Of a DNA stretch of 64,000 nt, positions 9,248 through 43,634 are shown one piece after another (position 1 is the stretch's first letter; every line of letters begins with the position of its first letter). The stretch is from sequence record LR756501.1; one strand, given 5' to 3'. The notes below the pieces were generated by a model. It was not told the DNA's origin. It did not search any database and was given only the letters and a program-made list of their open reading frames with translations. Made by a program: the position numbers and the translations under genes.

Positions 9248-10654
9248 ATGGTTATAAATTTTGAAGAATATTCTCTAAATGAGAAGTTTGGATTCCCAGA
9301 TTCCCTTGAACCTGTTGTATCCGTCTTAACTGAATATATGATTGATAAAATGAATTGGTGGACGAATAGAAAAGGCGTGGCCAATTATACAGATAGTCAC
9401 CATTTCGATATGAGAGATTTTGATCCATCGATAATTTCAAATAAAGATTTTCCTCTCGCACACATAAATTTGAAATTCTCAATAGTTAAAGGGGGAGCAA
9501 CAAGAACAGGTATAGCAGGATTTGCTTATCCATTTAAACCCAAACGATATAATGATGTTGATTACGACTATTCAAGAATTTATAGAGGTAAAATAAATAT
9601 GTTCTTAGAGTTTAAGACACATATACTTGGCAAATCTATACAAATAGGTAAACTCAGAGAAGAAGCACATACAGTTATAAGACACGAATTACAACATATG
9701 TATGAGACTTATCAAAAACTTATACGTGGTGTAGATATGAATCAAGATTCAACTGTTACAAATTTTAATTGGGTTTTATTGTTTGATGTTTACGATCGTT
9801 ATAAAAAATGTATAACTTTTAGAAGATTTTTCTATCTATTTTATTCCATTTCACACGAAAAAGAATTCAACGCTTTTATGTCTGAGTTCACATCAGGTAA
9901 AGTGAAGACAATTGAGGAAATAACAGCAGGAAATAAGGCTATGGTTATTTTAAAATACGATAATTTTGATAAGTTATATGATGAAATATTAAAGGAATTT
10001 GAAAAATATTATCCAAATGTTGACGTAGAATCATTACCCAAATATATTATTGAAGAAACGACTAAAAGCATTAAGGATCTAAAAGTTGGAATTCCAAATT
10101 GGTTAAAAGAATACGACAAAGATTTTAAAGGATTCCTCTACCAAATGTGGAAAAGAATCCAACTGAAAAAAGAAAAATTCATCAAGAAGTCCAGTAAAAT
10201 ATTTAACTCAAGAAAATTATTAGAATTCTCTCAATTTGCTGAAAGAGACGCTCTTGATCCATACGGCGAAGAAGATTGGGAAGGCGATGAAATAAACGCT
10301 AGAAAACTAGATGAAGAAGATGAAAGAAGAAGAATAGAAGAGGAAGAAATCGAAAGAAGATTACACATGGTTAGAGCCTTTATACATCTAATAGATTGGA
10401 ACTTCGATAGAGAAAATCTAAGTAGGGTCATTATTAAAAATAATAAAATAATCACAAGGGTAGAAGGTAGAGGCGATTATAACGATACATTCAACTATAC
10501 TTATCTAGGTGATACCCTAGTAGTGAGAAAAACATGGGGACCAATGATGAAAGAAGGTCTTTGGATATTTCTTAATGGTATATATGAACCTGAATTCCCT
10601 ATGCAAGAGGCAAATTTATTATACCTTTTCTTTAGAAATAAATGGGAAAATTAA
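9248..10654 (+). CDS. Putative head-packaged protein with HExxH zinc-metallopeptidase motif and DPYGEEDW tag
   Basis: N-terminal MVINFEEYSLNE; IRHELQHMYE; LDPYGEEDW. Confidence 0.75.
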   Translation: MVINFEEYSLNEKFGFPDSLEPVVSVLTEYMIDKMNWWTNRKGVANYTDSHHFDMRDFDPSIISNKDFPLAHINLKFSIVKGGATRTGIAGFAYPFKPKRYNDVDYDYSRIYRGKINMFLEFKTHILGKSIQIGKLREEAHTVIRHELQHMYETYQKLIRGVDMNQDSTVTNFNWVLLFDVYDRYKKCITFRRFFYLFYSISHEKEFNAFMSEFTSGKVKTIEEITAGNKAMVILKYDNFDKLYDEILKEFEKYYPNVDVESLPKYIIEETTKSIKDLKVGIPNWLKEYDKDFKGFLYQMWKRIQLKKEKFIKKSSKIFNSRKLLEFSQFAERDALDPYGEEDWEGDEINARKLDEEDERRRIEEEEIERRLHMVRAFIHLIDWNFDRENLSRVIIKNNKIITRVEGRGDYNDTFNYTYLGDTLVVRKTWGPMMKEGLWIFLNGIYEPEFPMQEANLLYLFFRNKWEN

Positions 10655-11211
10655 CCCCTCTTATATTTTGATTTACCTACTGTATAATACTTCCTGTAAT
10701 TTTTAAACATTTCACCCTTTTGTTCAAAGAATATTTTAAACGCTCTTTTAGATAAATCAGCGTCGTCATTACGCATTATCTTAACTCTTAAAAATTGTTT
10801 AGTCTCGGGATCAAGATCAAATATAGTATTCAAATAATCTTCTTTATTGTAATAAACACCTATACCCTTTATTTTATATTTCAAAAACATTGGATTATCT
10901 ACTCTTCTTCTATGTGATTCCTTTGCCCTATCTGATACATTAGCAGAAGGAACTATAGGACCAAATTTAGCAATAGCCAAAGCATATAATAAATCCCCAT
11001 ATCCTGGTCCCCATATAGAACCTATACAATGAATTCCTCTGTCTTCCATTGTTGTAGTTTGGAAACCTTCATTTACAAACCCAACTATTTCATTGTCCTT
11101 AACAAGAAAAATGATTTTATAGCCGCTCTCATCACTATCGTCATAGAAGATTTCTACGTCGTTCATTTTGCCTATTTGAGCAACTTCAAATATTTTAAAT
11201 GTCTTTATCAT
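10651..11211 (-). CDS. Putative head-packaged protein, possible GNAT-like fold
   Basis: N-terminal MIKTFKIFE; GPGYGDLLY resembles the acetyl-CoA-binding GxGxG motif (weak). Confidence 0.55.
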   Translation of the reverse strand: MIKTFKIFEVAQIGKMNDVEIFYDDSDESGYKIIFLVKDNEIVGFVNEGFQTTTMEDRGIHCIGSIWGPGYGDLLYALAIAKFGPIVPSANVSDRAKESHRRRVDNPMFLKYKIKGIGVYYNKEDYLNTIFDLDPETKQFLRVKIMRNDDADLSKRAFKIFFEQKGEMFKNYRKYYTVGKSKYKRG

Positions 11212-11212
11212 A

Positions 11213-11908
11213 TTATTTCATTATATAAAATACTCCGTCCTTATCCTCATAACTTATCATCTTTTGATTATAAGTGACGTTTTCAAAATGTTTGGACAAT
11301 TCTCTCAAAAGATAATCCGGGTTATAACTATTACAATGTGCCTTACCTAATCTCATCTTAAACACTTTATCCTCACATCTCGTTGGTAAGATATTGAAAG
11401 CCATCCCTTTATTACATTTATTAAATGCCTTAATTAAAATGTTTATAATATCTTCTATTTCGAAGGAATATGTGAAAGTTCCACTAGCGATGAACCAGTC
11501 TGTTTTTTCTTTAACATCTTCTATTGTATTTATCGTGTAGAATTTTGGATTTAATTTAAAACCAAGTAAGTGTTTCATTCTTGTTCCAAATTGACCAATA
11601 GCGTCTCTTATGAAATTTCTATTTATATCAACACCAATATAGTTAACATTTAATCCAATATCTTTTGTGTAACTATATAAATCACCAAACCCACAACCGA
11701 AGTCTAAAATAGAATCGTTATTTTTAACTCCAATTTCTAAAAGATTTTTGAATCTGGTTTTTTGTTCGTTGGGCCCATGTTCCCAATAAACCTTATAAGC
11801 ATTGAACCCTTTGTCCAATTTTTTAGTGGATGTTTTATAACGCTTTCTTTGATTGTTATAAACATCTAAAGTGGCACTCTTATCAAATTCATATAGTTTA
11901 TTGAACAT
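11213..11908 (-). CDS. Class I SAM-dependent methyltransferase
   Basis: ILDFGCGFGDLY (motif I), YIGVDIN, DWFIASGTF. Confidence 0.85.
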   Translation of the reverse strand: MFNKLYEFDKSATLDVYNNQRKRYKTSTKKLDKGFNAYKVYWEHGPNEQKTRFKNLLEIGVKNNDSILDFGCGFGDLYSYTKDIGLNVNYIGVDINRNFIRDAIGQFGTRMKHLLGFKLNPKFYTINTIEDVKEKTDWFIASGTFTYSFEIEDIINILIKAFNKCNKGMAFNILPTRCEDKVFKMRLGKAHCNSYNPDYLLRELSKHFENVTYNQKMISYEDKDGVFYIMK

Positions 11909-11929
11909 AAAACTATATATTAAAATAAA

Positions 11930-13291: not shown

Positions 13292-13369
13292 AAGAAATTC
13301 TTTTGTTTTTTGAATTTGTAAAGTTATATATTAAAATTCGAGGACCAGAATTTTATATATAGTTGCAAT

Positions 13370-14458
13370 ATGAAAAAATTTAGTCAATATATCAATGAAC
13401 AAAAATATAACGGTGAAGATAACAAGACATTTTTAATTACTAATGATTTGATTAAAAAATTAAGACTTCAATTTAGTAATGATAATTTATGTGTTGATAC
13501 TTTTCCAACGTGGTCACTTCTGCCTAACGGTTCAAAAAATATTGATATGGCTCTTTATATGTTATTCAATGATCTTTTCGAAGATAATACATGTACTTTT
13601 GACGCATATCTTTTAGATGAAGATTATAAATTAATAGAACATCAAACAATTGAAAGAGGGATAATTAGAGAAGCAAATTATATTCAAAGAGCTTTGTATT
13701 TAAGGAAAAATAAATGGGTTTATCGACAAGATTTGATTTTTAAAATAGTAGGTTCTAGATCGGAATATGTTGTTGATAGAAAAAAAGAGATTACAATTCA
13801 TGGAACAAAAAGGGTTGTATCTCTATTCGACCCTTATGGTGAAGAGGTTTGGGAAAGTTTAATTAATGAGAAACTTGGTGTATCTGATGTTGTTTATAGA
13901 ACAGCGGAAAAAATTTACGAACAAAGAAATTTAAAAAAGTGGGAAACAAAATTCAGTAGATCCAATTTAAAAGGTAAAATGACCCTTGATACTAAAGACT
14001 ACGAAGCACCTTTTAACGAAATGAATCTTGTTATACATTTTACCAATAACGAACGACCAAAGAATAGACACGGTGGTATGGATAGAATTGATCAAAACAC
14101 ATACGATATTTACATATATCACCATTGTAACAACGTATTTAGAACACTTGCTCACGAGTTAGATCACGTATATCAAGTTTATTTAAAGAAGGAAAGATAT
14201 AAAACTAATTTTGCTAAGCCTTCTGTATTAAGGAAATCTGAGCAGAGTCCAATTATGATGTCTGTTTACACTCAATTGAAACAAAGAGGCGTAAAGTCAA
14301 AAGAGGAGTTTATAGAGAAGTTAATGAAGTTACCAAAATATAAGAAGTACGTGGAAATACTTGATGATCCAAAAGAAAGTAATAAGAATAAGGCTGTAGC
14401 TGATAAAATGATAAAGAAGATGCATAAGTTGTACGCTGTATTCGCTGATGAAAAATAA
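13370..14458 (+). CDS. Putative head-packaged two-module protein; second module has an HExxH metallopeptidase motif
   Basis: MKKFSQYINE; FDPYGEEVWESLINE|KLG; TLAHELDHVYQ. Confidence 0.75.
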   Translation: MKKFSQYINEQKYNGEDNKTFLITNDLIKKLRLQFSNDNLCVDTFPTWSLLPNGSKNIDMALYMLFNDLFEDNTCTFDAYLLDEDYKLIEHQTIERGIIREANYIQRALYLRKNKWVYRQDLIFKIVGSRSEYVVDRKKEITIHGTKRVVSLFDPYGEEVWESLINEKLGVSDVVYRTAEKIYEQRNLKKWETKFSRSNLKGKMTLDTKDYEAPFNEMNLVIHFTNNERPKNRHGGMDRIDQNTYDIYIYHHCNNVFRTLAHELDHVYQVYLKKERYKTNFAKPSVLRKSEQSPIMMSVYTQLKQRGVKSKEEFIEKLMKLPKYKKYVEILDDPKESNKNKAVADKMIKKMHKLYAVFADEK

Positions 14459-14466
14459 GTTAAAAA

Positions 14467-15264
14467 ATGATGCTTAATTATATGCAATACATAAAAGAAA
14501 CAGAAGATACTTTATCTGGTACAACATCAGATATAAAGATCAAAGTAGAAGGTAAGAACTCTCTAGTTCAAACCCTTATAGATAATCTTTCTTTGGTTGT
14601 TAAGAAAAGAAAATTAAAGAGTGTTCGTATAAAAAGCATTAATGGTTATATCAATAGACAAACCTTTACACATCATGGTAATTTCTACGACACTTATTTA
14701 GAAGTAACTCTTACTAATAAAGACGTTATAGTTGGCGAGTACAAATCTTCTAGTAATAGTGTTCTTGTTAGAGTTAACGATGATATAGTTTACGATATGG
14801 ATAACAGAGCATTTGATAACGAAGTCTTAATTGATAAGATGGTAAATGAATATATTAAATATTTAAAAGAGAAGAGATTCACTATAAATGAAGCAGTTGA
14901 TGAAAAAGAAAATGGTGATAAGGTTTACGATTTTAATAGTATTATAGAACACGGTCACAGGATAGGTGCAAGTGAACAAACACTTAATGACGCTATAAGA
15001 AGAATGTTATTAAACAAAAACGTTACCTTCTGGTCACTTTTAGATGACGACCAAGTTGGATCTTTCGAAAAGACTTCTATCATTAAAGACGTATCTTACC
15101 AGTACGATATGATTCTCGTAACTACTAAGAATAACATGGAAGGATTTATTGATTTAAGTAAACCTGTTACGGTTCACCCTAGTTTTTTTAAAGAGGGGGA
15201 CGCTCTTAGAGGAAAGAAACCAGTAGAAAGAGTGAGATGGTATCATAAAGGAAAATTAAATTAA
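14467..15264 (+). CDS. Putative head-packaged protein ending in VRWYHKGKLN
   Basis: MMLNYMQYIKE; internal FTINE|A; C-terminal tag. Confidence 0.75.
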   Translation: MMLNYMQYIKETEDTLSGTTSDIKIKVEGKNSLVQTLIDNLSLVVKKRKLKSVRIKSINGYINRQTFTHHGNFYDTYLEVTLTNKDVIVGEYKSSSNSVLVRVNDDIVYDMDNRAFDNEVLIDKMVNEYIKYLKEKRFTINEAVDEKENGDKVYDFNSIIEHGHRIGASEQTLNDAIRRMLLNKNVTFWSLLDDDQVGSFEKTSIIKDVSYQYDMILVTTKNNMEGFIDLSKPVTVHPSFFKEGDALRGKKPVERVRWYHKGKLN

Positions 15265-15335: not shown

Positions 15336-16181
15336 ATGAGTCTAAAAGGTTATAAGAAATTCAACGAAGCACGTAGGCACAAACCGAAAGGAAGGCACAG
15401 AGGGGGAAATATGAACACTATCCCTCAACAGCGTTTCCCAAATTCTTCGTGGAAAGAAGACGTGCCAAGGTTCACCAATAAGATTGAACCTCGCGGTATG
15501 AATATGACCTTTTCTGAAAGATTCAAATACATACTTACCAAAATAAGTAAAAAAGGAAATAAAATAGCAAAAGAACTACTTGATCTTCCTAATAAACCTG
15601 AAGCAAAATTCGAATACTCTTATCTCGACCTAACAGGAAGACAAGATACAATGTCTTATTTACCTAATGGAGCAAGAGATATTCCAGAGGAAGAAAGATA
15701 TAAGTCAAATAAAAGACAACATTCCAAGATTTATAAAACCATAAAAACTATATTTGGTAGTAAGTACACAAAGAACGAAGTTACTAAATTTGTTTCCATT
15801 TATAACGAGGTTTATAAACAAGGACCAGATAAAACAGATACGACAAAACCAAAACAATCTGACGAGCAATTACTTAAAAAGATAATTGAAGATACAAAGA
15901 GTGATAAATTAAAATGGAAAAAAGAGACAGGTGCTGGTAATATGGCTAGATATGAAGCCAAAGTTACTATCACAGAAAAGAAATACCTTGTGTTTTGTTT
16001 CTTTCATTTTGATCAGTCTATAAAAGAGGAGGCTATGTCTTTTATAACTATTAATCTTTATAATGATTTAGGTAAGACAAAGGATGATAAGACAATGTGG
16101 ATAAACACTTTACAATTTAAAGATATAACAGATTTCTTACCAGTTTTCAAAGAGAAATTTAAAATAGAAGTAGAAGCCTAA
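15336..16181 (+). CDS. Putative head-packaged protein
   Basis: MSLKGYKKFNE. The DTKSDKLKW segment is shared with the DTENDKIKW segment of the next gene. Confidence 0.7.
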   Translation: MSLKGYKKFNEARRHKPKGRHRGGNMNTIPQQRFPNSSWKEDVPRFTNKIEPRGMNMTFSERFKYILTKISKKGNKIAKELLDLPNKPEAKFEYSYLDLTGRQDTMSYLPNGARDIPEEERYKSNKRQHSKIYKTIKTIFGSKYTKNEVTKFVSIYNEVYKQGPDKTDTTKPKQSDEQLLKKIIEDTKSDKLKWKKETGAGNMARYEAKVTITEKKYLVFCFFHFDQSIKEEAMSFITINLYNDLGKTKDDKTMWINTLQFKDITDFLPVFKEKFKIEVEA

Positions 16182-16783: not shown

Positions 16784-17604
16784 CTTATTCTAATAAAATC
16801 GTAATCTTTCACTTTATTAAAAGGAACTATAAATCTAGATCCAGCATTTGTAACAAAGGTGATTTTATTAAAGTTGTCCATATCTATATCAGTAACTTTA
16901 TAACTATTAGACCTAACTCCAATATCTGATCTAGGTGTATAAACTTGATCTAATCTAACGTCATTTGGATCAGAAGGGAAATCATCACCTATTCCAACAG
17001 GATCGTAGTCTTCAATGATATCGTCTTCTAAGGATTTAATCAATTTACCTTTTGAGTACCATTTAACCCCTTCTTTCACTGGTTCTTTAATTGACTTTAT
17101 TACATGTTCTAAAATTAAAAATACTCCTTCTTTACCATTTACTATGTCCACATTGCCTTCTTGGTACCTATGTTGACCTGTTTTAGCTCTATTTGGATTA
17201 CCTTTTACGTAATATCTAGCGTATAGATTACCAACTAGACCGTCTACAAATAAAGCAAAATAATTACTTTTATCTTCTATTAATTCATCGTCTTCTTCCT
17301 TCAATAACTCAATACCAAGTGGATCTTCGGCGTAAATTAATTCGTAACCAAAATCAAAATCACCAACTCTTTCTATCAACCAATCGTATAATTCTTTAAC
17401 CTTATTACGTTCGTCCCATATCTCTTCCCCGTAAGGATCTAAATCTTCGTGTCCTTCTCTCATCAAACAATATTGTTCGTAAGTGGCAATCTTTCTAGCT
17501 GATGGATCACTACCGCCTGCATCCTTATTAGTTTTGGCTTTACCTGATTTCTTCATCAGTTTCTTAAACTGTTTAACGGTGGATTTTCTTGGTAACCCTG
17601 GCAT
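16780..17604 (-). CDS. Modular protein carrying both DPYGEEIW and VKWYSKGKL tags
   Basis: ORF track; both motifs seen in translation. Confidence 0.75.
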   Translation of the reverse strand: MPGLPRKSTVKQFKKLMKKSGKAKTNKDAGGSDPSARKIATYEQYCLMREGHEDLDPYGEEIWDERNKVKELYDWLIERVGDFDFGYELIYAEDPLGIELLKEEDDELIEDKSNYFALFVDGLVGNLYARYYVKGNPNRAKTGQHRYQEGNVDIVNGKEGVFLILEHVIKSIKEPVKEGVKWYSKGKLIKSLEDDIIEDYDPVGIGDDFPSDPNDVRLDQVYTPRSDIGVRSNSYKVTDIDMDNFNKITFVTNAGSRFIVPFNKVKDYDFIRIS

Positions 17605-18674
17605 TAGAAATCATTAATTTTTGGACGTTGACCAGTACCACTTAAAGATTCCCATTCTTTTAAATAACCAGCCAATCCTATATTTCTATAAAACATTATA
17701 ACGTCTCTTCTTTCAACGTGATAATATTTAACAAGGATAAGATTTAATTGATCTATTTTAGCCAGAAATTCATTGAACTCAACGTCTTTATCTACTGATG
17801 TTTTAGCTTGTAAACTATCTACTATTCCAACTAAACTCCTAAGAGAAGTATCTTTTATAAATGAACTCCAACTTTTATATTTATTGAGATAACTATCAAC
17901 TATGTTAAGATTCTCCTTAGTTTCAGGTGGAACGTCGTCTACTTCTCTTTTAGGATTTACTTTTTTAACAGATGGTTTAGGCGGTCTTGTTAGATCGTAA
18001 TTTATTCTACGATGTCCTTCTTCACCAGCATAAAATTCAGTTTTAACTGATTCTGGAGCTAGTTTAAACCAACCTTTAGGTCTATCTAATTTGTTTTGTT
18101 TACCTATTAACATCATAAGTTTCCAACAGTTATCATAGGTGTTATCGTACTTCTTTTGAAAGATAACGTCACTATAAATAAGTTTCATTATATCTGCTGA
18201 ATCCTCTGGTTTCTGTAATATTAAAGATTGTTTGATAACTTCTTCTGAGAAGGATAAATCTTTCATACCAGCTTTATAAGCGTCATCAAGTCTTTTCTTT
18301 TCTTCGTTAACAAAAAGTTGTCTTTTATGTTTGGTTAAATTTGGTTTAAGATAGTGAAGATTATTACGCATCTCTTTTGTGCCTTTAATGTCTCTAACTC
18401 CTAACCAACGAGTATCTTCTTTTTTAAAAAATGTTCTGGCTTTTTGATCTCCTCTTTTCCATCTTTTCATAAAATCATCTAAGAATTTATCTAAAAAGGA
18501 TGGGCTAATAGTAATTTTAAAATCACTCATGAGGACGTTGGACATTTCTTCAACGTCTATGGTTTCTTTGGGTTCGAGCGAAACTATGACGTCGTGCATT
18601 GCGTCTCTTAATTTTCTACTGGAAATCATAGCCATGTCCTCGTTTAAAAAGTCGTTGTAATTTAATTCTAGCAT
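17604..18674 (-). CDS. Putative head-packaged protein
   Basis: MLELNYNDFLNE; late-type motif at 18721-18733. Confidence 0.7.
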   Translation of the reverse strand: MLELNYNDFLNEDMAMISSRKLRDAMHDVIVSLEPKETIDVEEMSNVLMSDFKITISPSFLDKFLDDFMKRWKRGDQKARTFFKKEDTRWLGVRDIKGTKEMRNNLHYLKPNLTKHKRQLFVNEEKKRLDDAYKAGMKDLSFSEEVIKQSLILQKPEDSADIMKLIYSDVIFQKKYDNTYDNCWKLMMLIGKQNKLDRPKGWFKLAPESVKTEFYAGEEGHRRINYDLTRPPKPSVKKVNPKREVDDVPPETKENLNIVDSYLNKYKSWSSFIKDTSLRSLVGIVDSLQAKTSVDKDVEFNEFLAKIDQLNLILVKYYHVERRDVIMFYRNIGLAGYLKEWESLSGTGQRPKINDF

Positions 18675-19066: not shown

Positions 19067-19312
19067 TTAACTTATATAGTCACCAGGACCACTTTGACGA
19101 TCAAAATCACTACTAAAAGATTGGTCTTTTAATATTTTATTCTTATATTCAAGAAAAGCCTTTTGTATTACTCTAACTGACTCTTCCACGTCGCAAGGCT
19201 TTTTCAAATCCACTTTCATCAGAAGATTTACTATTCTTGTAGCGTAAACAAACTCCTCTGGGAGATTCATCTCTTTTGCTGTTGGTTTATTTTCGTCTAA
19301 TATTTCTTTCAT
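19067..19312 (-). CDS. Hypothetical protein
   Basis: ORF track; ATGA overlap. Confidence 0.65.
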   Translation of the reverse strand: MKEILDENKPTAKEMNLPEEFVYATRIVNLLMKVDLKKPCDVEESVRVIQKAFLEYKNKILKDQSFSSDFDRQSGPGDYIS

Positions 19313-19536
19313 AACATTTCATCTATTAATCTTGATCTCATCCAATTTTTTAATTCATCTTCTTTGAAATAAACCAAGAAAGTTCCATCGTTCATTTTAT
19401 GTCCGTCAAGATTATACTTTTCATTTTCTTCTTGGGTTACAAATGTAACAATTTCTTTGGTATCTTCGTCCATACGACTATACCACGCATTTGCGCCAAT
19501 CACCCAACCTTTTTTAGTAATTTTATCAAGACTCAT
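19309..19536 (-). CDS. Small protein with C-terminal RSRLIDEML tail
   Basis: Shared C-terminal motif. Confidence 0.7.
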   Translation of the reverse strand: MSLDKITKKGWVIGANAWYSRMDEDTKEIVTFVTQEENEKYNLDGHKMNDGTFLVYFKEDELKNWMRSRLIDEML

Positions 19537-19732
19537 GTTTATTAGTCATTTCATCTATTAAATTTGTTCTAACTAAATTCTTCATTTCGTTCTTCATTAA
19601 AACAGCCTTTTCGTACATATCATTAATTTTATCTGAATCCATAAACTTTCGGGTTCTATCAAAAGAATTTAATAATTTATCTATACATTCTTTCTCAAAT
19701 GCCACTTGTTCAAATAAATCTTTATCCATCAC
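19526..19732 (-). CDS. Small protein with C-terminal RTNLIDEM tail
   Basis: Shared C-terminal motif. Confidence 0.7.
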   Translation of the reverse strand: MMDKDLFEQVAFEKECIDKLLNSFDRTRKFMDSDKINDMYEKAVLMKNEMKNLVRTNLIDEMTNKHES

Positions 19733-20476: not shown

Positions 20477-20502
20477 AAGATTCTGGTTTTATTGATTATA
20501 TA

Positions 20503-21000: not shown

Positions 21001-21062
21001 TATTAAGCGGTTTTTTACTCGTGTATATATTTAAAATCAAAAATGGAAATCGTCAAATTTTT

Positions 21063-21278: not shown

Positions 21279-21281
21279 ATT

Positions 21282-31146: not shown

Positions 31147-31147
31147 A

Positions 31148-31489: not shown

Positions 31490-31490
31490 A

Positions 31491-32533: not shown

Positions 32534-33535
32534 TTAGTATAAATTTCCGTTTACAACTTCTACTCTAAATCCTCTCTCCTGTAGCTCTATGTGTAATTCT
32601 TCTATATCAAGATCTCCGTGATAAAGTAAATCACCTTCAGCGGGCTCTTCAAATCCCATTCTTTGTAACTCAGGATATTGATTTAAAATATGTTCGTCAT
32701 ACATTTCACCACTATCAAGGAAAACACCAGCCCCTATCTTAGCGTCCTCTGGTACAGTTCCTAATCTTAAAATAAAATCTTCTTTTGGTAACGCAATTGA
32801 TTGAGGTACAACGTTCTTAGGGTTACATGAAAGTTTACCACCGTCATCAAATCTAATTGATATTTTACCGTCTTCTTTTTCTTCTACAAATTTAGCACTT
32901 TTATTGTTGTGTTCGGATTTAGCGTTTTTATAAACAACTTTATCGCCTTTTTTGAAATTTGATTTTGCTGGGGCTTTACCACCGTAGAATGTATCTGGTA
33001 CATCAAATGTGCCTGGTCCCCATTCTGCTCTACCTAATCTTTCCTCGGGAATCTCTTGATATCCTTCAGGAACTTTCTTCTTTGGTTTTGGTTTAGGTGT
33101 ACCAGCGGCGTAAACATTTTTAGCGTTGGCTGCTAATTTTTTCTTATCGTCAAAGACTATTCTATATTTACCGTCATCTTCTCTTATACCAACAAAAACA
33201 CCTGTTTTACCATCGTGCTCTGATCCTTCTTTATAATAAACAATTCTATCACCTGCTGTTGGTACATCACCATCGTTATCATTTACAGGTTTAGCTGGTT
33301 CAACTTCTTTATCAACATGAACATTTAACATCTTATTCAGATAATCTAAATCATCGTCGTCTTGATGAACAGGACTATTACCTGGTTTATTATCAGGATC
33401 GCCACCTTTACTAAGTTTATCTAGGAGAACTTTTTCATCTGGTGTTAAATTTTCCAAACCTTTATCAAGGAGTTCGTCAATTTTAGCTTGATCTTCAACC
33501 CCTTCATTGATGAATTGTTTATATCTTTTTACCAT
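32534..33535 (-). CDS. Putative head-packaged protein with two KOW/SH3-like repeats
   Basis: MVKRYKQFINE; GDRIVY..GSEHDGKTG..IVFDD and GDKVVY..KSEHNNKSA..IRFDD. Confidence 0.75.
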   Translation of the reverse strand: MVKRYKQFINEGVEDQAKIDELLDKGLENLTPDEKVLLDKLSKGGDPDNKPGNSPVHQDDDDLDYLNKMLNVHVDKEVEPAKPVNDNDGDVPTAGDRIVYYKEGSEHDGKTGVFVGIREDDGKYRIVFDDKKKLAANAKNVYAAGTPKPKPKKKVPEGYQEIPEERLGRAEWGPGTFDVPDTFYGGKAPAKSNFKKGDKVVYKNAKSEHNNKSAKFVEEKEDGKISIRFDDGGKLSCNPKNVVPQSIALPKEDFILRLGTVPEDAKIGAGVFLDSGEMYDEHILNQYPELQRMGFEEPAEGDLLYHGDLDIEELHIELQERGFRVEVVNGNLY

Positions 33536-34125
33536 TATTCTTTTTTATTTTTTTCCCACCATCTTGCACCAGTTGCTGGTGGTGGATTCTTTTTAGCTTC
33601 TTCTTCTTGTGCTAATCTCTTAGCCTCTTTTTCAGATCTTTTAGCTTTTCTTTCTTGTTTTTTTATTTCCAAATCGGCTTTTTTCTTAGCAATCTCTTCT
33701 TCTCCGAGTTTATGTCTTAAATGTGGTTTACTTACAGCAACAAGTTTCTTATCATCAAATCTAACTACAATTTTACCGTCTTCTCTTAATTTGTGAACCA
33801 TTCCTAGTTGATAACGTCTGCCCCCAGTATTACCGAGATAAACCACTTCTTCCCCAACATTTATTGGTGTTTTAGGATCTTCATCTCTATCAAAATCCAT
33901 ATCTAAATCTAGTTCTCTTTCTTCTATATCTTCATCTGGTTCTCTACCGTATTCATCTGGATCACCGTCGTCATCGTAGTAATCACCGCCGTCACCATCA
34001 CCTGGTTCACCGCCATCATAATCGTGATAACCACTAAAACTATTTCTACGTTCTTCAGCGTCTAATTCCTCAGGACTACTATACCATTTAGCAGCTTCAA
34101 CAAAGGATTTGTAATTCTTGGTCAT
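33535..34125 (-). CDS. Putative head-packaged acidic protein with one KOW/SH3-like repeat
   Basis: MTKNYKSFVE; D/E/G-rich tract; GEEVVY..REDGKIVVRFDD. Confidence 0.75.
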   Translation of the reverse strand: MTKNYKSFVEAAKWYSSPEELDAEERRNSFSGYHDYDGGEPGDGDGGDYYDDDGDPDEYGREPDEDIEERELDLDMDFDRDEDPKTPINVGEEVVYLGNTGGRRYQLGMVHKLREDGKIVVRFDDKKLVAVSKPHLRHKLGEEEIAKKKADLEIKKQERKAKRSEKEAKRLAQEEEAKKNPPPATGARWWEKNKKE

Positions 34126-34172
34126 AACTCTAACTTATTTTCTTCTATATATTAATATGGAAAAATGAAAAT

Positions 34173-34955: not shown

Positions 34956-35030
34956 ATCAATAATTAATGTTTTATTTTATACGATTTTATTCTTTAAAAG
35001 TTTTGTTTAAATATTTTAATATATAGCGTT

Positions 35031-36497
35031 ATGTTGAAAAACTATTGGACATATATTAAAGAATCAGCAGATGGTTTAACAAAATTAATAATTTGTATTC
35101 ACAATATAGAAGACTATAACGTTATAGCTGAATTTTTGGATTTTGAAGGGTTCAAATGGGGCAACGAAAGAGTAATCACATTAAATAGAGATTATAATTG
35201 TTTTAAAAATGAATCTCCAGATTTTTGTTTCATTTTACACGAACCAGGGGCTTTGGGATACGGTAGAAAACACGGTTTAATGGGCCCAGGTTGTGATTAT
35301 AACAGTTACAGTTTTATGGAAGGAGTAGATTTCATTGATGAATATATTAATGATAACAAAAAACCAGCAAGAGTAAGATGGTATAAAAAAGGTAAACTAA
35401 ATGAGTCTAAAGAAGATATTGGTAGGAAAGTTAAAATGAGAGATGATTCTCGTTATTACGACGAAGCTTACGGTAAGTCTGGGGATGGTTACGGTGTAAT
35501 TTACGAATGGACTCCTTGTCCAGATTACGCTAATATGGAAAATTACCATTCGTACTCAATAGAATGGAGTAACGGTGTTAAAGACGGTTATCAAAAAATA
35601 GATTTTGATTTTATAGAAGATTTAGAACCAGAACAACCAGTAAAAGTAAGATGGTACAAAAAGGGGAAATTGGTGAATGAAAAAGATAGTTGGGAAGAAG
35701 AAGAGGTCGGTCGCACTTTAGTTGGAAAAAGAGTAAGAATTAGAAAAGATTCGCAATTTTACAATCAAGCTTTTAGAGAAGGGAACGGTAAAAAAGGAAT
35801 AGGAACAGGTATAATCACACATTACGTATATAGTGACGATTACCCTTTTAGTATTAAATGGGACGAAAGTGGAATATCGTTTGGTTATCAAAAAAGAGAT
35901 TTTGATATTATAGAAGACACAGATGAACCAGTTAGAGTAAGATGGTACAAAAAAGGTAAATTAAATGAATCTAAAGAGTATATTGGAAAAAGAGTGAAGA
36001 TGAGAGAAGATTCAGCGTATATTAATCAGGCCTACGGTTATCATAACGAAGATAACGGTGAAGGTATAATAACTGATTACATTAGCGAAGAAGAAAGAGT
36101 AGCAGGCGGACTCCCATATAGAATTACTTGGGATAATAAACACAGCAATTCTTACAATAGAAGAGATTTTGATTTTTTAGACGATTTAAAACCAGGAAAG
36201 ATTAGATGGTATAAAAAGGGTAAATTGTTAAATGAAGGTAAGAAATATATGTACGGTGATATTTGCACTCTTATTGGCACTGATGAAGATGTTAAAATTC
36301 TAGCATTTAAAGATTTTATACATGTAACAGAATATCAAATTGAATATCAAAATGGTAACATAAAATGGGTGCCAGAAGCGTGGTTACAATTTAAAGGGAA
36401 AACTATATCCAAACCAAAACCAGTAGATCGAATAAGATGGTACTCGAATGGTAAGTTAAGAAATGAAAATAAAAAATTTATATATAACAAAAAATAA
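35031..36497 (+). CDS. Five-module polyprotein with [VI]RWYxxGKL(x)NE linkers; modules 2-4 are paralogous SH3-like domains
   Basis: MLKNYWTYIKE; five linker copies; repeated G[RK][KR]V[KR][MI]R.DS.[YF]...A...G.G.I...Y.I.W...DFD. Confidence 0.85.
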   Translation: MLKNYWTYIKESADGLTKLIICIHNIEDYNVIAEFLDFEGFKWGNERVITLNRDYNCFKNESPDFCFILHEPGALGYGRKHGLMGPGCDYNSYSFMEGVDFIDEYINDNKKPARVRWYKKGKLNESKEDIGRKVKMRDDSRYYDEAYGKSGDGYGVIYEWTPCPDYANMENYHSYSIEWSNGVKDGYQKIDFDFIEDLEPEQPVKVRWYKKGKLVNEKDSWEEEEVGRTLVGKRVRIRKDSQFYNQAFREGNGKKGIGTGIITHYVYSDDYPFSIKWDESGISFGYQKRDFDIIEDTDEPVRVRWYKKGKLNESKEYIGKRVKMREDSAYINQAYGYHNEDNGEGIITDYISEEERVAGGLPYRITWDNKHSNSYNRRDFDFLDDLKPGKIRWYKKGKLLNEGKKYMYGDICTLIGTDEDVKILAFKDFIHVTEYQIEYQNGNIKWVPEAWLQFKGKTISKPKPVDRIRWYSNGKLRNENKKFIYNKK

Positions 36498-36506: not shown

Positions 36507-37955
36507 TTGATAAAAGAATTTCATAATTTTGCGTTAAACGAGGAAGCATCTATAAGATTCCCTGATAGTCTTGAATACTGGACCAAAAAGGGTAAAAAGG
36601 GTAAAGATGTTATAATCTATACCCACGACGATATGGACGGTATCTTTAGTGGAATCGCTATGAAAGAATACCTTCAAGCTCACGGTTTTACTGTAGCTGG
36701 TTACGGTGTTGTTAATTATACAGATGGTTGGAAAGTATTTACTTTAGATAAAACTTATATCAACGTTTGTGTTGATTACGCCGAGGATAACGCTGATCTT
36801 GATCTCTACATCGATCACCACATGGAAGAAGGTGATTTATACAAGAAGAGTGAATTTTCTATTAAAATGAAAAGTGATTCTTGTTACGGTTTAATAACAA
36901 GAGTATTAGGAATGCCAACAGATAAATATATTATATCTGTTATATCTATGATTGACGCAGCAAAATATGACGAATATAACGTTGATATTAAAACAATTTT
37001 AAATTTCAATCTTAGAGATATAATGAAAGAAAAAGACCCAAGACTTGTATTCGCTGGGGCTTTCAATCAATTAGTTAAAAGAAGTGATTATAGAACTATT
37101 ATAGAAGTTGTAGCCAACGGTACACTATCTATATACAAGATATTCAAATTATTTAAAATTCTTTACCCTCTAAATAATTTATCAGTAAAAAGAGGAGCGG
37201 ATAAAGAAGATATAAGACATAGAGTACTAAATAGATTACCATTAGAAGACGACGAAGAATTAAAAGCAATACCCGAGTTTGTACCAGATTCAAAGGAAAG
37301 AATGGGTAAAATGATGGGTAAAACACTTGGTCAATACGATAAACCTACAATATATAATATTGAAGATTTTGAAACATTCTACTGGAACATGGAAGAAAAT
37401 AAATTCAAATTCGACGGTTTCGTTGTTATAAAGAATTTAGTATATGTACCAGTTGGAACTTGGGCTAACGCTTTAAGAGCCAGAGCTTTAATTGAAACAG
37501 CACTTGGTAAACACGATAAAAATATTCAGTTTATTCTTCTTGATTACGGTGCTTCTTTACAATTGGCTGCTTACAGAAACATTGATGGTATGGAGAAATT
37601 ACCTGTATTGAAGGGTGGTGAAGTGTTGGATGATTTGGATAAATATACAAGATTCTTGATGAATTTTGTTTTACCAAGACAATTTGATTTTAAGTACGCT
37701 GGGGCTAAAGCTGGTGGGCATAAGGGAATTGGCAATTTGAGTAATATACTTGGTAAATGTGAGAAGCAAGGACCTTTTTACGGTCTTAAGTTTATGGATT
37801 TAATGAAGAACTGGATTATACATGATATAACTGGTATTAAATGGAAATTGAATCTTATTTGGAACGAGAATCCTCCAGTTGAAGCTAAGGTTAAAGATAA
37901 AGTAATGAATCAGAAATTGATGATGACTGGTGATATAAGGAAAATAAATTTATAA
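36507..37955 (+). CDS. DHH-family phosphoesterase with putative capsid-targeting N-terminus (TTG start)
   Basis: YTHDDMDG (HxxxDxDG), CVDY, YIDHH; C-terminal GGHKG (DHHA1-like GGH); N-terminal IKEFHNFALNE. Confidence 0.8.
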   Translation: MIKEFHNFALNEEASIRFPDSLEYWTKKGKKGKDVIIYTHDDMDGIFSGIAMKEYLQAHGFTVAGYGVVNYTDGWKVFTLDKTYINVCVDYAEDNADLDLYIDHHMEEGDLYKKSEFSIKMKSDSCYGLITRVLGMPTDKYIISVISMIDAAKYDEYNVDIKTILNFNLRDIMKEKDPRLVFAGAFNQLVKRSDYRTIIEVVANGTLSIYKIFKLFKILYPLNNLSVKRGADKEDIRHRVLNRLPLEDDEELKAIPEFVPDSKERMGKMMGKTLGQYDKPTIYNIEDFETFYWNMEENKFKFDGFVVIKNLVYVPVGTWANALRARALIETALGKHDKNIQFILLDYGASLQLAAYRNIDGMEKLPVLKGGEVLDDLDKYTRFLMNFVLPRQFDFKYAGAKAGGHKGIGNLSNILGKCEKQGPFYGLKFMDLMKNWIIHDITGIKWKLNLIWNENPPVEAKVKDKVMNQKLMMTGDIRKINL

Positions 37956-37957: not shown

Positions 37958-39184
37958 ATGTTAAGATATTTTGATTATATAAAAGAATCCACAGAAGACT
38001 CTAAATTTAAAAAAGGAGATAAAGTTATATTTACGCCTTTATCAAATAGGTCTTATTATAATATACATAAAGGAGCTTTATGTGACGTGTCTTTTGTTTT
38101 CTCCACTAATAAAGGTGAGTACAGTATTAAAACTCCATCTGGTGCTTCTATTATGGCCTTAGAGGAAGAATTGAGATACGAAAACGAGCCAGCTCCAGTT
38201 GAAACAGAGGCTAAAAAACAATCAAATTATATCGAAAATCAATTTAAACCTAAAGAAGAAACTAAACCTGAAACACCAACAGGTGATGATATTAGTATAG
38301 GTAAAAGAGTTCTTGTTAATGGTACTGAAGGAAAGACTGAATGGAAAGACGCTAAAGGAACTGTTAAGAAAGTAAACAAAGGCGCCTATCTTATTGAATT
38401 TGATGAAGATGATTCTAAAAATCAAAGTAAGCACTCTATGTTAGTTAAGAAAGAATTTGTTACATCATCTGATGAGCCTTCCGCTGATGTTATTTTTAAC
38501 ATGGGTGATAAGGTCACTTGTGTGGACCAAGCAAGTGAATATTATAATAAAGTAGGTGAAGTGACTAATGTTTGGGATAATGATAATAGTTGTATGGTAG
38601 ATTTTCTTGAAGCTGACGGAACTACCACAAGTATATACATGGGGCCTGGTGAAATTAAAATATCTGAATACGCTAAAAAGAAAGCTGGATTTAATATACC
38701 AGTAAATGGTCCAAAAGAAGGCGACACTAAAGTAGAAATCAGTGAAGAAGAAGACGATGACGATGATGTTGTTATAGCAAAGAACGTCGTACCTTTCAAG
38801 AAAGAGGATCTTTTAGAATTTTCATATAAAGATTTCTTATTAGAAGAAAAAATATCTACACACGAAGATTTATTAGCAAATAAAACTAAATACGAGAAAG
38901 CTCTCGAAAATCCAGATTACCCAAAAATGAAAAAAGCTTTCTTGGAAAGAAGTTTGGGAACATTAGAAATAATAGAATCCTATTACCAATTCCTTATTAA
39001 TAAGATAGGAAAGGAACTACCAGTATATAGAACAGTTGAACAAATTGAAAACGTAGATTTGTTGAAAACCAAAACCAAAGTGAGAGCGTCAGACTCCAAG
39101 GAATTGACTAGTAAATATTCTTTTGATCAGGGTATTATAGCTTATTGGAAATTCAAGGACGCTGTAGTTTTCAGGACAATTTAA
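37958..39184 (+). CDS. Putative head-packaged protein with three KOW/SH3-like modules
   Basis: MLRYFDYIKE; FKKGDKVI, IGKRVLV, FNMGDKVT. Confidence 0.75.
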   Translation: MLRYFDYIKESTEDSKFKKGDKVIFTPLSNRSYYNIHKGALCDVSFVFSTNKGEYSIKTPSGASIMALEEELRYENEPAPVETEAKKQSNYIENQFKPKEETKPETPTGDDISIGKRVLVNGTEGKTEWKDAKGTVKKVNKGAYLIEFDEDDSKNQSKHSMLVKKEFVTSSDEPSADVIFNMGDKVTCVDQASEYYNKVGEVTNVWDNDNSCMVDFLEADGTTTSIYMGPGEIKISEYAKKKAGFNIPVNGPKEGDTKVEISEEEDDDDDVVIAKNVVPFKKEDLLEFSYKDFLLEEKISTHEDLLANKTKYEKALENPDYPKMKKAFLERSLGTLEIIESYYQFLINKIGKELPVYRTVEQIENVDLLKTKTKVRASDSKELTSKYSFDQGIIAYWKFKDAVVFRTI

Positions 39185-40585: not shown

Positions 40586-41452
40586 TTATGAATCCATTGG
40601 TAAAGAAATACTTTCTTTTTTATGAATCCATGATAATCTATTTTGTGTAATATTTTCTCCAAATATTTCGTTCACAGCTTTTTGAACGTCGTAAGAGTTA
40701 TAATAGTCGTGACCAGCGATTGTTCCGCCTATTTTCACTTTTGGGTACCATTCTGTTATATCTTTTTTAGCTATTTCGTAACTATGATCAGCGTCAATGA
40801 AAACAAAATCTAAGGACAGATCTTCGTAATATTTTGGAGCTATATAAGAACATTCTACTATTGGGTTTATGTATTCTTTTAACGGTGATATGTTTTTTAA
40901 AAAATTATCGTATAAATTATTATTTTTTAAATATTCTTCGTGATATATTTCACCTGAACCTTGCCAAGTATCTACACAATCAAATTTTATTTTCTTACCT
41001 GAATTTTTTATCTCGGTTGCCATAAATGAACCAGAACGTCCTAACCAAGAGCCTATCTCCACAAAATGATCACCGTCTTTCCCGTCTTGAACAGCCTTTT
41101 TATAAACACTTTGAAAGTCAAACCAACCGTCTATTTTATTATAAATATGATTACCGTATAATTTATCTATTTTTATATCAAATAGAAATGAGGAACCGTC
41201 GTAGAAATTTAAAGTTAAATCGTCATTATCATTAGAATACGCGTCTGGTTTTACCCAATGATTTGTACCTGGATAAGAAAAATTATCAGTAAGTGAGTAA
41301 CAAACATTACCATTTAAAACAAAATCTATTTTTAGTATTTTATTTAAATGTTCACTGCCACCAGCGTCATTCAAATTAACTGAACTAATAATAATTTTAT
41401 TTGGGTCATTTTCTATTCTAACATAGAAATCATTTTCAGTTGGATTTTTCAT
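40586..41452 (-). CDS. Class I SAM methyltransferase (Methyltransf_24-like) with N-terminal extension
   Basis: [11 protein letters not shown]; [10 protein letters not shown]; GGTIAGHDY. Confidence 0.88.
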
Positions 41453-42492
41453 CTTTTAAAAAATTTTTGCCATATATTTTTTTCACCATATTTATCTAAA
41501 TCACTTTCCATCATTAATTTAACCAAATCTTTAAATTTAGTTTTAGCTTCCCAACCAAGAATTTCTTTCGCCTTTGTTGGATCACCAAGTAAAAGATCAA
41601 CCTCTGCTGGTCTGAAATATTTTGGATCCACTTGTATTACAATAGTGTTATTTGTATTTCTATCTACTCCTATTTCATTTACACCTTCACCACGCCATAA
41701 TATATCAATATTAACATATTTACAAGCCTCTTCTACAAATTCTTTATTTGAATGTGCTTCACCTGTGGCTAAAACGAAATCATCTGGTTTATCTTGCTGT
41801 AACATAAGATACATACCATATACAAAATCTTTCGCGTAACCCCAATCCCTTTTGGCGTTTAAATTACCTAAATGTATTGGTGTTTTCGTTTTTGTCCAAT
41901 TAACTAAACCTTTTGTAATTTTTCTCGTTACAAAAGTTTCTCCTCTACGTTCACCTTCGTGATTGAACAATATACCGTTAGAAATGAATAAGTTATAAGC
42001 GTCTCTGTAATTTTTACAAATCCAGTAAGCGTAAAGTTTAGCTACACCGTAAGGTGATCTTGGGTGAAATGGCGTAGTTTCTTTTTGTGGTACTTCTTGT
42101 ACTTTACCAAACAATTCTGATGTAGATGCTTGGTAAATTTTTGTATGTGGTGAGTAACGTCTAACTGTTTCTAGGATTCTAAGTACCCCTAAAGCGTCTA
42201 CTTGTCCTGTATATTCAGGGAGTTCAAAAGAAACTGCAACGTGGGATTGGGCTGCTAGGTTATATAGTTCATCAGGTTTAATATCTTGTATAACGTGCTC
42301 TATTGATAGAGTATCTGTAACGTCACCGTAATGAAGTTTTAGTTGTGGATAAATATGATCAATTCTACCTGTATTAAAGGAGCTAGATCTTCTAATTATA
42401 CCGTGTACTTCGTAACCTTTTTCTAAAAGAAGCTCAGCTAAATGGCTTCCGTCCTGTCCCGTGATCCCTGTGATCAGTGCTTTTTTACTCAT
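41449..42492 (-). CDS. gmd: GDP-mannose 4,6-dehydratase
   Basis: [66 protein letters not shown]. Confidence 0.98.
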
Positions 42493-42516
42493 TTCATAGG
42501 CTATTATTTTTTAAGG
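42493..42516 (-). repeat. 24-bp leader element, copy 2
   Basis: Identical to 27073-27096; abuts the gmd start codon. Confidence 0.9.
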
Positions 42517-42573
42517 CGTTATGATATTTATAGATAAAAAATCTAAAAGTTTATTTTAATATATACAGTTACT

Positions 42574-42885
42574 ATGATAAAGAGTTTTAAATTATTTGAA
42601 TCTGAAATAAATGAAATAGATCCTTATGGTGAAGAAAATTGGGAAGGGATAGAAGAATTAACACCAGATACCCCTATAAATATTGGTGATACTATTTATT
42701 GGAGTGATGGAATTGAATTATGCACAATAACAAGAATTGAAAAAGATGACGAAGACGATTGGATATGGGGGATTACATCACCAGAATCGATTCAAAAAGG
42801 TTTTGTAAAAGAAACAGGAAATAAAGAACTACCATACGGAAGAAGGAATTTAACTCATAGTAAATTAAAAATAAAACACGTGTAG
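42574..42885 (+). CDS. Putative head-packaged small protein with DPYGEENW tag
   Basis: MIKSFKLFESEINEIDPYGEENWE; KOW/SH3-like remainder (IGDTIYW). Confidence 0.75.
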   Translation: MIKSFKLFESEINEIDPYGEENWEGIEELTPDTPINIGDTIYWSDGIELCTITRIEKDDEDDWIWGITSPESIQKGFVKETGNKELPYGRRNLTHSKLKIKHV

Positions 42886-43634
42886 TGATAAAGAGTTTTA
42901 AATTATTTGAAGAACTAAAAAGAAAAGTACCAGCAGACTTCTCAGTTGATTTCACACCCGAAACAGAAGACTTTGCTAAGTTTGAAAGTGATTTTCTATT
43001 AAAAGACGATTTTGTTATAGATAAAAACGTTGCTGTATGTAAAGAAAAACTTTGTTCTTTTGAAATTAAAAAAATCAATGAAGACGATTTAATTATATAT
43101 GAATTAACTATTAAAGATAAAGACGGCGTCGTAAAAAACGAGAAGAAATTTAGAGCACATCAATATATTCCAAAAGAAAGAATCAACTTATTAGATACTA
43201 TACTCAATGTGTGTGCTTTTATAAAAGATAAAGTAACAAGAGAAATTCATGCTGACGTTGATCCTTACGGGGAAGAAGTATGGGACGGTCCAGAAGAAAT
43301 TAAGAAACCAGAAAGAGATCCAATAGAAGCAGCCTACGGTGAAGAAGACTGGGACCCTGATAATGTTGACGTTGGAGTAAGAGCAAGAATGGCGAATCGT
43401 CATATACCACCAGCAGATATATTGGCTATATTACAAAGAGACCAACAACGCAGAGATAGAGAATTTGAAAGGGGCAGAGAAGCTAATATTGAAAGGCACG
43501 CAGCTGATATGCGTAGGCGAGCAGAAGAACAAAGAGCCGCGGCTGATGCAGCACCTAAAAAGAAAGGTTTTTATAAAACAATTGGAGATTTCCTTAAAAA
43601 ATCGGGACCTCCATCGATGCACCGTAGAGGATAA
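42885..43634 (+). CDS. Putative head-packaged protein with two DPYGEE-type tags (GTG start)
   Basis: MIKSFKLFE, with the same 5' DNA as 42574; VDPYGEEVWD and AYGEEDWD. Confidence 0.75.
   Translation: MIKSFKLFEELKRKVPADFSVDFTPETEDFAKFESDFLLKDDFVIDKNVAVCKEKLCSFEIKKINEDDLIIYELTIKDKDGVVKNEKKFRAHQYIPKERINLLDTILNVCAFIKDKVTREIHADVDPYGEEVWDGPEEIKKPERDPIEAAYGEEDWDPDNVDVGVRARMANRHIPPADILAILQRDQQRRDREFERGREANIERHAADMRRRAEEQRAAADAAPKKKGFYKTIGDFLKKSGPPSMHRRG

Follow-up and report, generated by a model that had tools for sequence, protein, structure and literature searches.

An expanded family of N-terminal leaders resembling the T4 capsid-targeting sequence in the 735 kb phage genome LR756501.1

Introduction

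The internal proteins of bacteriophage T4 carry a capsid-targeting sequence, which was described for IPI–III and Alt by Mullaney & Black (1996), as cited in PMC5694885. This sequence directs the incorporation of the proteins in the scaffolding core, and gp21 cleaves it off behind a Glu residue (PMC3012670, PMC5694885), and internal proteins bearing the signal are ejected (PMC3012670). In phiKZ, 201phi2-1 and SPN3US the propeptides are cut at [ASG]-x-E, have a small residue (A, S or G) at P3, are mostly more than 100 residues long and are believed to target the prohead; only eight of the ∼50 head proteins of SPN3US are processed (PMC5694885). Here, we describe an N-terminal leader, M-x(1-4)-[FY]-x-x-[FY] followed by E or [IL]-x-E, that recurs on proteins encoded in a 64,000-nucleotide stretch of DNA (the window) and throughout the genome from which it derives. 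The window is identical (100%) to positions 255061-319060 of LR756501.1 (= LR756503.1), the unannotated genome of an uncultured phage (735,411 bp, 32% G+C), which is the 735 kb genome reported in PMC7162821. The leader is likely to be a T4-type capsid-targeting propeptide, and the head of the phage is probably packed with an unusually large set of different proteins.

The N-terminal leader

An original prediction made from the window alone listed 14 open reading frames (ORFs) with a T4-like capsid-targeting N-terminus. All 14 N-termini are present at the positions given for them and with the sequences as written, two of them with non-ATG starts (TTG at 36507 and GTG at 42885). The genome-wide set comprises 1,024 ORFs called greedily over the window and over LR756501.1 outside the window. 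The calls are crude, since the longest-ORF procedure places certain starts visibly too far upstream, and additional carriers are masked by such over-long starts (for example MERRNG-MIKEFANF and MRRFG-MIKNYSKYIKE).

The pattern used in the prediction, M-x(1-4)-[FY]-x-x-[FY]-x(0-3)-E, matches 83 of the 1,024 ORFs. The expected number of matches is 13.9 from internal Met positions and 10.3 from any internal position, and shuffling residues 2–15 of each protein gives 15.1 ± 3.6 (maximum 26), so that the excess over the shuffles is ∼19 standard deviations. A genome-wide search for the pattern had been proposed together with the prediction, and the pattern lies far above the internal and shuffled expectation (83 versus 10–15). 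A position-specific scoring matrix (PSSM) anchored at the first aromatic residue converged on 91 sequences; it assigns at least 10 bits to 96 ORFs and at least 14 bits to 87, where internal windows predict 0.06–1.9. This matrix was trained on the same N-termini, and the a priori pattern, the independent IMG/VR set and the T4 signal agree with it. The tagged set amounts to ∼80–110 proteins genome-wide, or ∼8–10% of the ORFs, and far exceeds both that of T4 and the number originally listed.

The leaders had been expected to end in [LI]-x-E, as for a gp21-type site. A hydrophobic-x-Glu tripeptide is present in 79 of the 96 PSSM ORFs, with the Glu at residue 9–15; P3 is I or L in 55 of these 79 and I, L, V or F in 74, P2 is mostly N, F or K, P1 is E and P1' is mostly E, A or S. 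Two leader classes can be distinguished, one with the spacing of the T4 signal (Y-x-x-F-I-N-E) and a shorter one (F-K-L-F-E). Four of the 14 listed ORFs score weakly on the PSSM (15336, 3.3 bits; 37958, 5.8 bits; 17604, 6.3 bits; 28974, 9.9 bits), and all four have a hydrophobic-x-E ending at residue 9–12. Stripped of their leaders, the 96 proteins fall into 74 BLAST families, with similarity ending past ∼12 residues; the proteins behind the leaders are thus mostly unrelated, as claimed for the window, and the leader is a portable element and not a family trait. The paralogue groups among the tagged proteins are few and small (11, 6, 4 and 3 members).

Similarity to the T4 signal and the head genes

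The original prediction gave MKTYQEFIAE as the start of T4 IPII and IPIII, and exact copies are found in two ORFs of the T4 record AF158101. This peptide scores 18.8–20.3 bits on the matrix built from the LR756501.1 phage alone, where 18 bits is reached by one of 3,746 internal-Met windows and by none of ∼16,000 random internal windows. With the T4 capsid-targeting sequence the leaders share their sequence pattern, their length and their position in the protein.

A head module lies at 71969-78166 of the record and encodes a portal (phrog_213, E = 2e-67), an 807-residue protease-scaffold protein and a major capsid protein (phrog_138); T4 gp20, gp21 and gp23 belong to the same PHROGs (phrog_213, phrog_207 and phrog_138, respectively). 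The first 250 residues of the protease-scaffold protein (73913-76336) are the head maturation protease (phrog_207, E = 5e-27), in which GEFDHP and VSSRAAG are the aligned counterparts of GELNHP (His motif) and VSSRGLG (Ser motif) of T4. A gp21-like protease, for which a search had been suggested, is therefore present between T4-type portal and capsid genes with its catalytic motifs kept. The capsid protein has an [ML]-N-E-N site ∼45 residues in, which is conserved in 15 orthologues and aligns with L-T-E|A of T4, L-M-E|N of PAU and I-N-E|S of PTm1 (the bar marks the known or predicted cut). Three separate ORFs resemble the T4 large terminase gp17 (609226-611493, 623865-624410 and 699854-701026 of the record; E = 7e-29, 3e-15 and 2e-35, respectively) and may be paralogues or a split gene.

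Residues 315–482 of the protease-scaffold protein consist of twelve tandem 14-residue units, K-[SN]-I-x-Y-[ST]-E-Y-I-A-E-N-[LV]-D, each of which holds an aromatic-x-x-aromatic-I-x-E sequence, the core of the leader. Behind the repeats come an acidic linker rich in Q, A and G and then a C-terminal domain, and an IMG/VR copy of the protein is found at L141:6001-8421. The interior of the proteome was scanned with the leader matrix minus its Met columns (195,596 positions). At least 8 bits is reached at 86 internal positions, nine of them in the protease-scaffold protein and at most two in any other protein; at least 13.9 bits is reached at three positions in the protease-scaffold protein versus three in the remaining 194,823. 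The protease-scaffold protein contains [LI]-x-E at three times the mean density of the proteome. The repeat array and the hydrophobic-x-E sites are kept in 16 orthologues, with 11–12 units in each of three ∼630–640 kb relatives.

Conservation of the junction

For the tagged ORF 36507-37955, which encodes a DHH-family phosphoesterase, 317 homologues were found. In 114 of 117 orthologues [LIV]-x-E stands 12–14 residues before a conserved Trp, with I or L at P3 in 110 of the 114, and the leader preceding this tripeptide is 3–22 residues long (from MKLFE| to MIKKYNQFVTENINEKLSLIKE|). Similarly, all 11 orthologues of 32534-33535 have a 9–17-residue leader ending in hydrophobic-x-E. Members of the 9248-10654 family keep the junction [ILV]-[NQ]-E|[KE]-[FY]-G-[FY]-P, including two proteins in which the domain stands behind other modules; the retention of the junction at an internal domain suggests internal processing sites.

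The AlphaFold model of the DHH protein has an overall predicted local distance difference test score (pLDDT) of 88, and residues 1–14 (mean 39) are the lowest-confidence part of the chain. The model of 9248-10654, which has an HExxH motif, is poorer (overall pLDDT 60), with residues 1–14 again of lowest confidence (mean 26) and values below 50 also for residues 322–361. In both models the leader is placed outside the predicted fold.

Relatives and phage PAU

The leader is clade-wide: in independent IMG/VR loci totalling 608 kb, retrieved on account of another motif, the matrix gives at least 12 bits for 95 of 916 ORFs. The complete relatives LR745206, LR756502, LR756504 and LR756500, and Lak-A1, give 9–17 matches to one leader pattern versus 2–11 for the control, and the same pattern gives 40 matches versus seven in LR756501.1. 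The modest excess in the relatives, set against 40:7, shows that the expansion of the leader is lineage-specific.

The cultured relative PAU (Sphingomonas/Sphingobacterium phage, JQ362498, 219 kb), the host of which is a Sphingobacterium (PMC3738902), has 17 ORFs that start with M-K-[TS]-[LI]-x-x-L-[YF]-E, and the control pattern has none. Most of them lie around the portal, protease, scaffold and capsid genes (100248-113339, with five other sites); two are annotated as 'internal capsid protein' and one as 'scaffolding', and the C-terminal tail of the PAU protease contains K-K-L-Y-E-S. PTm1 has no ORF with the PAU-type pattern. A literature search found no paper on the PAU leader family or on an expanded capsid-targeting family in huge phages; a paper on a cultivated megaphage concerns phage G and is unrelated.

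The promoter-like motif and DPYGEE-x-W

In 27 genes, exactly 4 nt separate the end of the motif ATATATAG from the start codon. The motif lies 3–8 nt upstream in 34 genes, and nearly all of these have N-termini that resemble the tag (for the strict set, odds ratio 4.8 and p = 1e-6). The link that had been claimed between the tagged ORFs and this motif is borne out in the window, where 13 of the 14 have the motif or adjoin, directly behind, a gene that has it. The window sites of TTTWATATATAG are 9236-9243, 11913-11920 (minus strand), 13355-13362, 27144-27151, 29847-29854 (minus), 35019-35026 and 42559-42566; the spacing to the start codon is 4 nt, at times 6–7 nt, and no Shine–Dalgarno sequence was seen. 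The fixed short spacing of ATATATAG points to a regulon dedicated to the tagged genes and suggests leaderless or near-leaderless mRNAs. A homologue of the late sigma factor gp55 was not found by phmmer; the ORF at 69450-69824 of the record is similar by eye but has no PHROG hit and was rejected. At 19067-23468 on the minus strand of the window there are ∼14 small ORFs in a row (66–196 residues), many of which share the upstream sequence GAACAGAATTAATAGATAAAAT or relatives of it, which may be another promoter class, distinct from ATATATAG.

A second recurrent peptide, D-P-Y-G-E-E-x-W, is found at 103 genomic sites by DNA pattern and 106 times in 91 called proteins. Its first six residues are invariant, the Trp follows in 100 of the 106 occurrences and it is usually preceded by [KR]-[VI]-[FY]-[ST]-x-[LE]. 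It stands just after the leader, between the modules of long proteins or, in tandem small ORFs, exactly four residues before the stop codon, and its association with proteins that bear the leader is strong (odds ratio 7.4, p = 4e-13). In the window DPYGEE occurs at 10256-10273, 13829-13846, 17422-17439 (minus), 27528-27545, 27840-27857, 42619-42636 and 43260-43277. Its codons vary synonymously at every position, with GGT-GAA-GAA dominant, which rules out a Shine–Dalgarno-like GGAGG for the next gene. In the AlphaFold model of 9248-10654 it falls within a disordered stretch. It is common in IMG/VR contigs related to the LR756501.1 phage and was found in none of the ∼630–640 kb relatives nor in Lak-A1, and a literature search found no phage-related description of it. 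A 146-residue ORF (553796-554236 of the record, minus strand), whose similarity to tail-sheath families (phrog_23, E = 2e-14) is confined to their C-terminal part, ends in DPYGEENWKE and lies in a row of eight small ORFs, each with the motif at its end. As a tentative suggestion that may well be wrong, DPYGEE-x-W could be a second, position-independent signal for head loading or processing, read by one phage factor; up to ∼150 products (∼15% of the proteome), many of them built like polyproteins from a series of small modules, would then be loaded into the head and cut up. The conserved coding sequences of the tag and of DPYGEE could also be recombination joints that shuffle cargo modules.

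Tagged genes of the window

The first tagged ORF, 9248-10654 (plus strand, 468 residues), has the leader MVINFEEYSLNE with a predicted cut after E12, a conserved HELQH at residue 146 and DPYGEE at residue 337; ATATATAG at 9236-9243 ends 4 nt upstream of its ATG. On the minus strand, 10651-11211 (186 residues; MIKTFKIFE, E9, 18.9 bits) lies directly behind 11213-11908 (minus, 231 residues), a candidate absent from the original list. The latter starts MFNKLYEFDKS, scores −1.6 on the PSSM, which is below threshold, and has a weak methyltransferase-like match and ATATATAG at 11913-11920, ending 4 nt upstream. The next plus-strand ORF, 13370-14458 (362 residues), has ATATATAG at 13355-13362 and the leader MKKFSQYINE (E10, 23.3 bits), with spacing identical to that of T4 MKTYQEFIAE; DPYGEE is at residue 154 and HELDH at residue 262. 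Behind it, as second gene, lies 14467-15264 (plus, 265 residues; MMLNYMQYIKE, E11, 22.1 bits). Two weakly tagged ORFs follow: 15336-16181 (plus, 281 residues; MSLKGYKKFNE, E11), with ATATATAG ending 23 nt upstream, and 17604-18674 (minus, 356 residues; MLELNYNDFLNE, E12), without the promoter-like motif. Searches of PHROGs, NCBIfam and PDB sequences gave no family or PDB match for 14467-15264, 15336-16181 or 17604-18674.

Further along, 27159-28595 (plus, 478 residues) is untagged and was likewise absent from the original list; it has ATATATAG at 27144-27151, ending 7 nt upstream, and two internal DPYGEE motifs at residues 124 and 228. ORF 28974-29840 (minus, 288 residues; MINVIKYSLFE, E11) belongs to phrog_2859, of unknown function, and has ATATATAG at 29847-29854, ending 6 nt upstream. 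The leader MVKRYKQFINE (E11, 25.0 bits) is that of 32534-33535 (minus, 333 residues), which lies behind 33535-34125 (minus, 196 residues; MTKNYKSFVE, E10, 19.6 bits), itself with ATATATAG at 34145-34152, ending 19 nt upstream. An operon on the plus strand starts with 35031-36497 (488 residues; MLKNYWTYIKE, E11, 20.0 bits), a protein of repeated small domains of unknown function with ATATATAG at 35019-35026, 4 nt upstream. It is followed by the DHH phosphoesterase 36507-37955 (plus, 482 residues; (M)IKEFHNFALNE, E12) and, as third gene, by the weakly tagged 37958-39184 (plus, 408 residues; MLRYFDYIKE, E10). The last two are 42574-42885 (plus, 103 residues), with a composite leader of MIKSFKLFE (E9) and DPYGEENW (residues 16–23; 22.2 bits) and ATATATAC at 42559-42566, ending 7 nt upstream, and 42885-43634 (plus, 249 residues; (M)IKSFKLFE, E9, 22.1 bits), with DPYGEE at residue 126.

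Enzymes had been predicted among this cargo: two HExxH peptidases, a DHH phosphoesterase, a ParB-like nuclease and a GNAT-like protein. The DHH assignment stands on homologues and on fold: PF01368 is found in homologues, D42, D44, D99, D103-H104-H105 and G403-G404-H405 are invariant, and the model matches RecJ, NrnA and pGpG phosphodiesterases with Foldseek probability 1.0. The HExxH motif is kept in all compared homologues of 9248-10654 that cover the region (five full-length; one more is without the region), but no fold match accompanies it: the model (pLDDT 60) has no Foldseek match in the PDB at E ≤ 0.001, and the Atlas look-alikes for the HExxH proteins (SprT-like, M78 and LPD23) are all sub-threshold (<0.9). 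For the other two assignments, searches of the window against PHROGs, NCBIfam and PDB sequences brought up nothing ParB-like or GNAT-like; a tagged GNAT acetyltransferase is present in the genome outside the window. PHROGs and NCBIfam searches with the 14 window proteins and 20 tagged proteins from outside it left almost all as orphans, and PDB sequence searches with four window proteins gave no match. Elsewhere in the record, 154863-158564 (minus) encodes a 1,233-residue protein comprising a tag, four DPYGEE-delimited modules and a tRNA nucleotidyltransferase (CCA-adding enzyme; phrog_2244, E = 4e-57). In IMG/VR relatives, leucine-rich-repeat proteins stand right behind a composite leader, MIKNFKIFE...DPYGEEDW (L095:1057-1806, L031:6366-7118, L025:12288-13376, L070 and L056).

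Other features of the window

A 21-N assembly gap (26463-26483, masked or gapped) lies within 23465-27073 (minus), a 1,202-residue fusion of SbcD-like and SbcC-like nucleases that forms a single open frame across the 21 N; both flanks of the gap match successive parts of the same family, and no tagged ORF overlaps it. A cluster of small ORFs at 29992-31850 has lipoprotein-like signal peptides, a hydrophobic stretch followed by Cys (for example MKKLFGILVIAAVTFLAVSCG), and the ORF at 5239-5652 (minus) has collagen-like G-x-y repeats. Judging from their N-termini, we take the genes at 41449-49488 and 54730-62551 to be sugar-nucleotide and glycosyltransferase-like genes, among them 41449-42492 (minus), presumably with a GDP-mannose dehydratase-like N-terminus. 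They flank a 1,755-residue ORF at 49466-54733.

Discussion

Of the readings considered, capsid targeting is the best supported, by the protease gene, the likeness of the leader to the scaffold repeat and the conserved junction, and it would work as follows. Transcription of many tagged genes would be driven by a promoter-like motif reserved for them, TTTWATATATAG, which stands 4 nt ahead of the ATG. The leader would form a short amphipathic helix that copies one 14-residue scaffold repeat (K-N-I-x-Y-S-E-Y-I-A-E-N-L-D) and, as such a copy, would join the scaffold core during prohead formation and be cut at the same sites. At [IL]-x-E in the scaffold repeats and in the leaders, and at [ML]-N-E|N in the capsid propeptide, the gp21-family protease would cut behind the Glu, freeing the cargo inside the head, where it would stay in the virion for ejection into the host. 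This cargo would be ∼80–110 mostly orphan proteins, with a DHH phosphoesterase, a CCA-adding enzyme and a GNAT protein among them and leucine-rich-repeat proteins in relatives.

Several observations weigh against this reading. About 100 packaged species would far exceed those of any characterized phage, and for some carriers, the CCA-adding enzyme being one, a place in the virion is not self-evident. The promoter-like motif is missing from the capsid and portal genes, which does not favour co-expression of the tagged genes with head assembly. If the match to the scaffold repeats is counted as one evolutionary event, its chance is ∼0.01 for a protein of this size. The mature N-terminus of the PAU capsid protein is one residue off the predicted LME| cut (LME64); this protein loses ∼65 residues, from 585 to 520, by N-terminal sequencing (PMC5646251). 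The LR756501.1 phage itself is uncultured and is known from sequence alone; a search for RNA runs found none.

The tagged proteins could also be loaded into the head by the signal and yet be mainly core or 'inner body' material, for filling, DNA organization or pressure control, rather than injected effectors. Mimicry of the scaffold repeat by the tag would suit such a role, as would the prevalence of orphans with small repeated β-rich modules among the carriers and the large internal protein masses of phiKZ and SPN3US (PMC5694885). However, the DHH, CCA-adding and acetyltransferase carriers have intact catalytic motifs, the leucine-rich-repeat proteins behind the leader in relatives are typical of effectors, and T4 internal proteins with the signal are ejected (PMC3012670); we regard a role as core material as somewhat unlikely. 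A tag for another destination (another part of the virion, an intracellular compartment or oligomerization), or a stability signal, left in place by the head protease, is improbable. It would be easier to reconcile with the share of the proteome involved, ∼10%, which seems much for head cargo, and complex prediction for the protease-scaffold protein (L141 copy) with the 103-residue tagged protein gave a score of 0.00, which is not evidence either way. Such a tag would leave unexplained why the leader matches both the T4 signal and the scaffold repeat, why its [IL]-x-E junction is fixed despite a variable leader length, why the same tripeptide stands at the maturation site of the capsid protein and why the PAU genes with analogous leaders are neighbours of head genes and have been given the annotation of internal capsid proteins.

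Constraints on translation starts deserve consideration since the motif stands 4 nt before the ATG with no Shine–Dalgarno sequence seen, and the codons for K, I, N, F and Y are A/T-rich in a genome of 32% G+C; the leader would then be a by-product of A/T-rich first codons on (near-)leaderless ATATATAG mRNAs in an organism without Shine–Dalgarno initiation. Shuffling of the same N-terminal residues yields 15 matches rather than 83, and many tagged genes are operon-internal and lack the motif. Moreover, orthologues of 40% identity retain the aromatic spacing and the Glu, as do internal junctions, and the same peptide occurs in the scaffold repeats, well away from any start codon, making this by-product very improbable. 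Chance, or descent from one paralogous family with a shared N-terminal domain, could draw on the few small paralogue groups, and is contradicted by the 74 families, by similarity that ends ∼12 residues in and by the ∼19 standard deviation enrichment, to the point of being hardly conceivable.

If the capsid-targeting reading is correct, the largest known phage commits roughly one gene in ten to proteins carried inside the capsid, which would partly explain how huge phages use their extra coding capacity and would point to a rich and so far unexploited source of early-acting proteins for host takeover or anti-defence. It would supply a sequence rule for head cargo in uncultured T4-like Bacteroidota phages, composed of the leader, [IL]-x-E, mimicry of the scaffold repeat and the promoter-like motif. 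It would also suggest a mechanism of capsid targeting, the copying of a scaffold repeat, where the mechanism is unclear even in T4. PAU offers a cultured test bed.

Encapsulin cargo-loading peptides are likewise short and portable and load unrelated enzymes into a shell of HK97-type fold; they are usually C-terminal, bind the shell, remain uncleaved and differ in sequence, and the likeness is one of analogy only. The phages phiKZ, 201phi2-1 and SPN3US have a homologous protease family, cleavage after Glu and many head-internal or ejected proteins; the leaders of the LR756501.1 phage are not of their propeptide type, being 9–15 residues long with I, L, F or V at P3. PAU is closer, with a gp23-type capsid protein and a gp21-type protease that are related to those of the LR756501.1 phage. 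It differs in having Leu where the latter has Phe or Tyr, so that PAU proteins fall below threshold on the LR756501.1 matrix, and in having few carriers, clustered by the head genes, and no scaffold repeat array that we could see.

The closest correspondence is with T4. Both phages have unrelated cargo behind a conserved 10–20-residue leader with the same aromatic spacing and an [IL]-x-E end, a gp21-family protease with gp20/gp23-type head genes, and a scaffold rich in I-A-E (T4 gp22 has three IAE and 16 [LI]-x-E sites). The T4 carriers are a handful, compared with ∼80–110 in the LR756501.1 phage, the leaders of which are known from genes alone. In the latter, the scaffold is fused to the protease and bears a 12-unit tandem array of the tag-like peptide, and there are in addition the short leader class F-K-L-F-E, a promoter-like motif 4 nt from the ATG and DPYGEE-x-W. 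The tag system of the LR756501.1 phage is a strongly expanded variant of the T4-type system.

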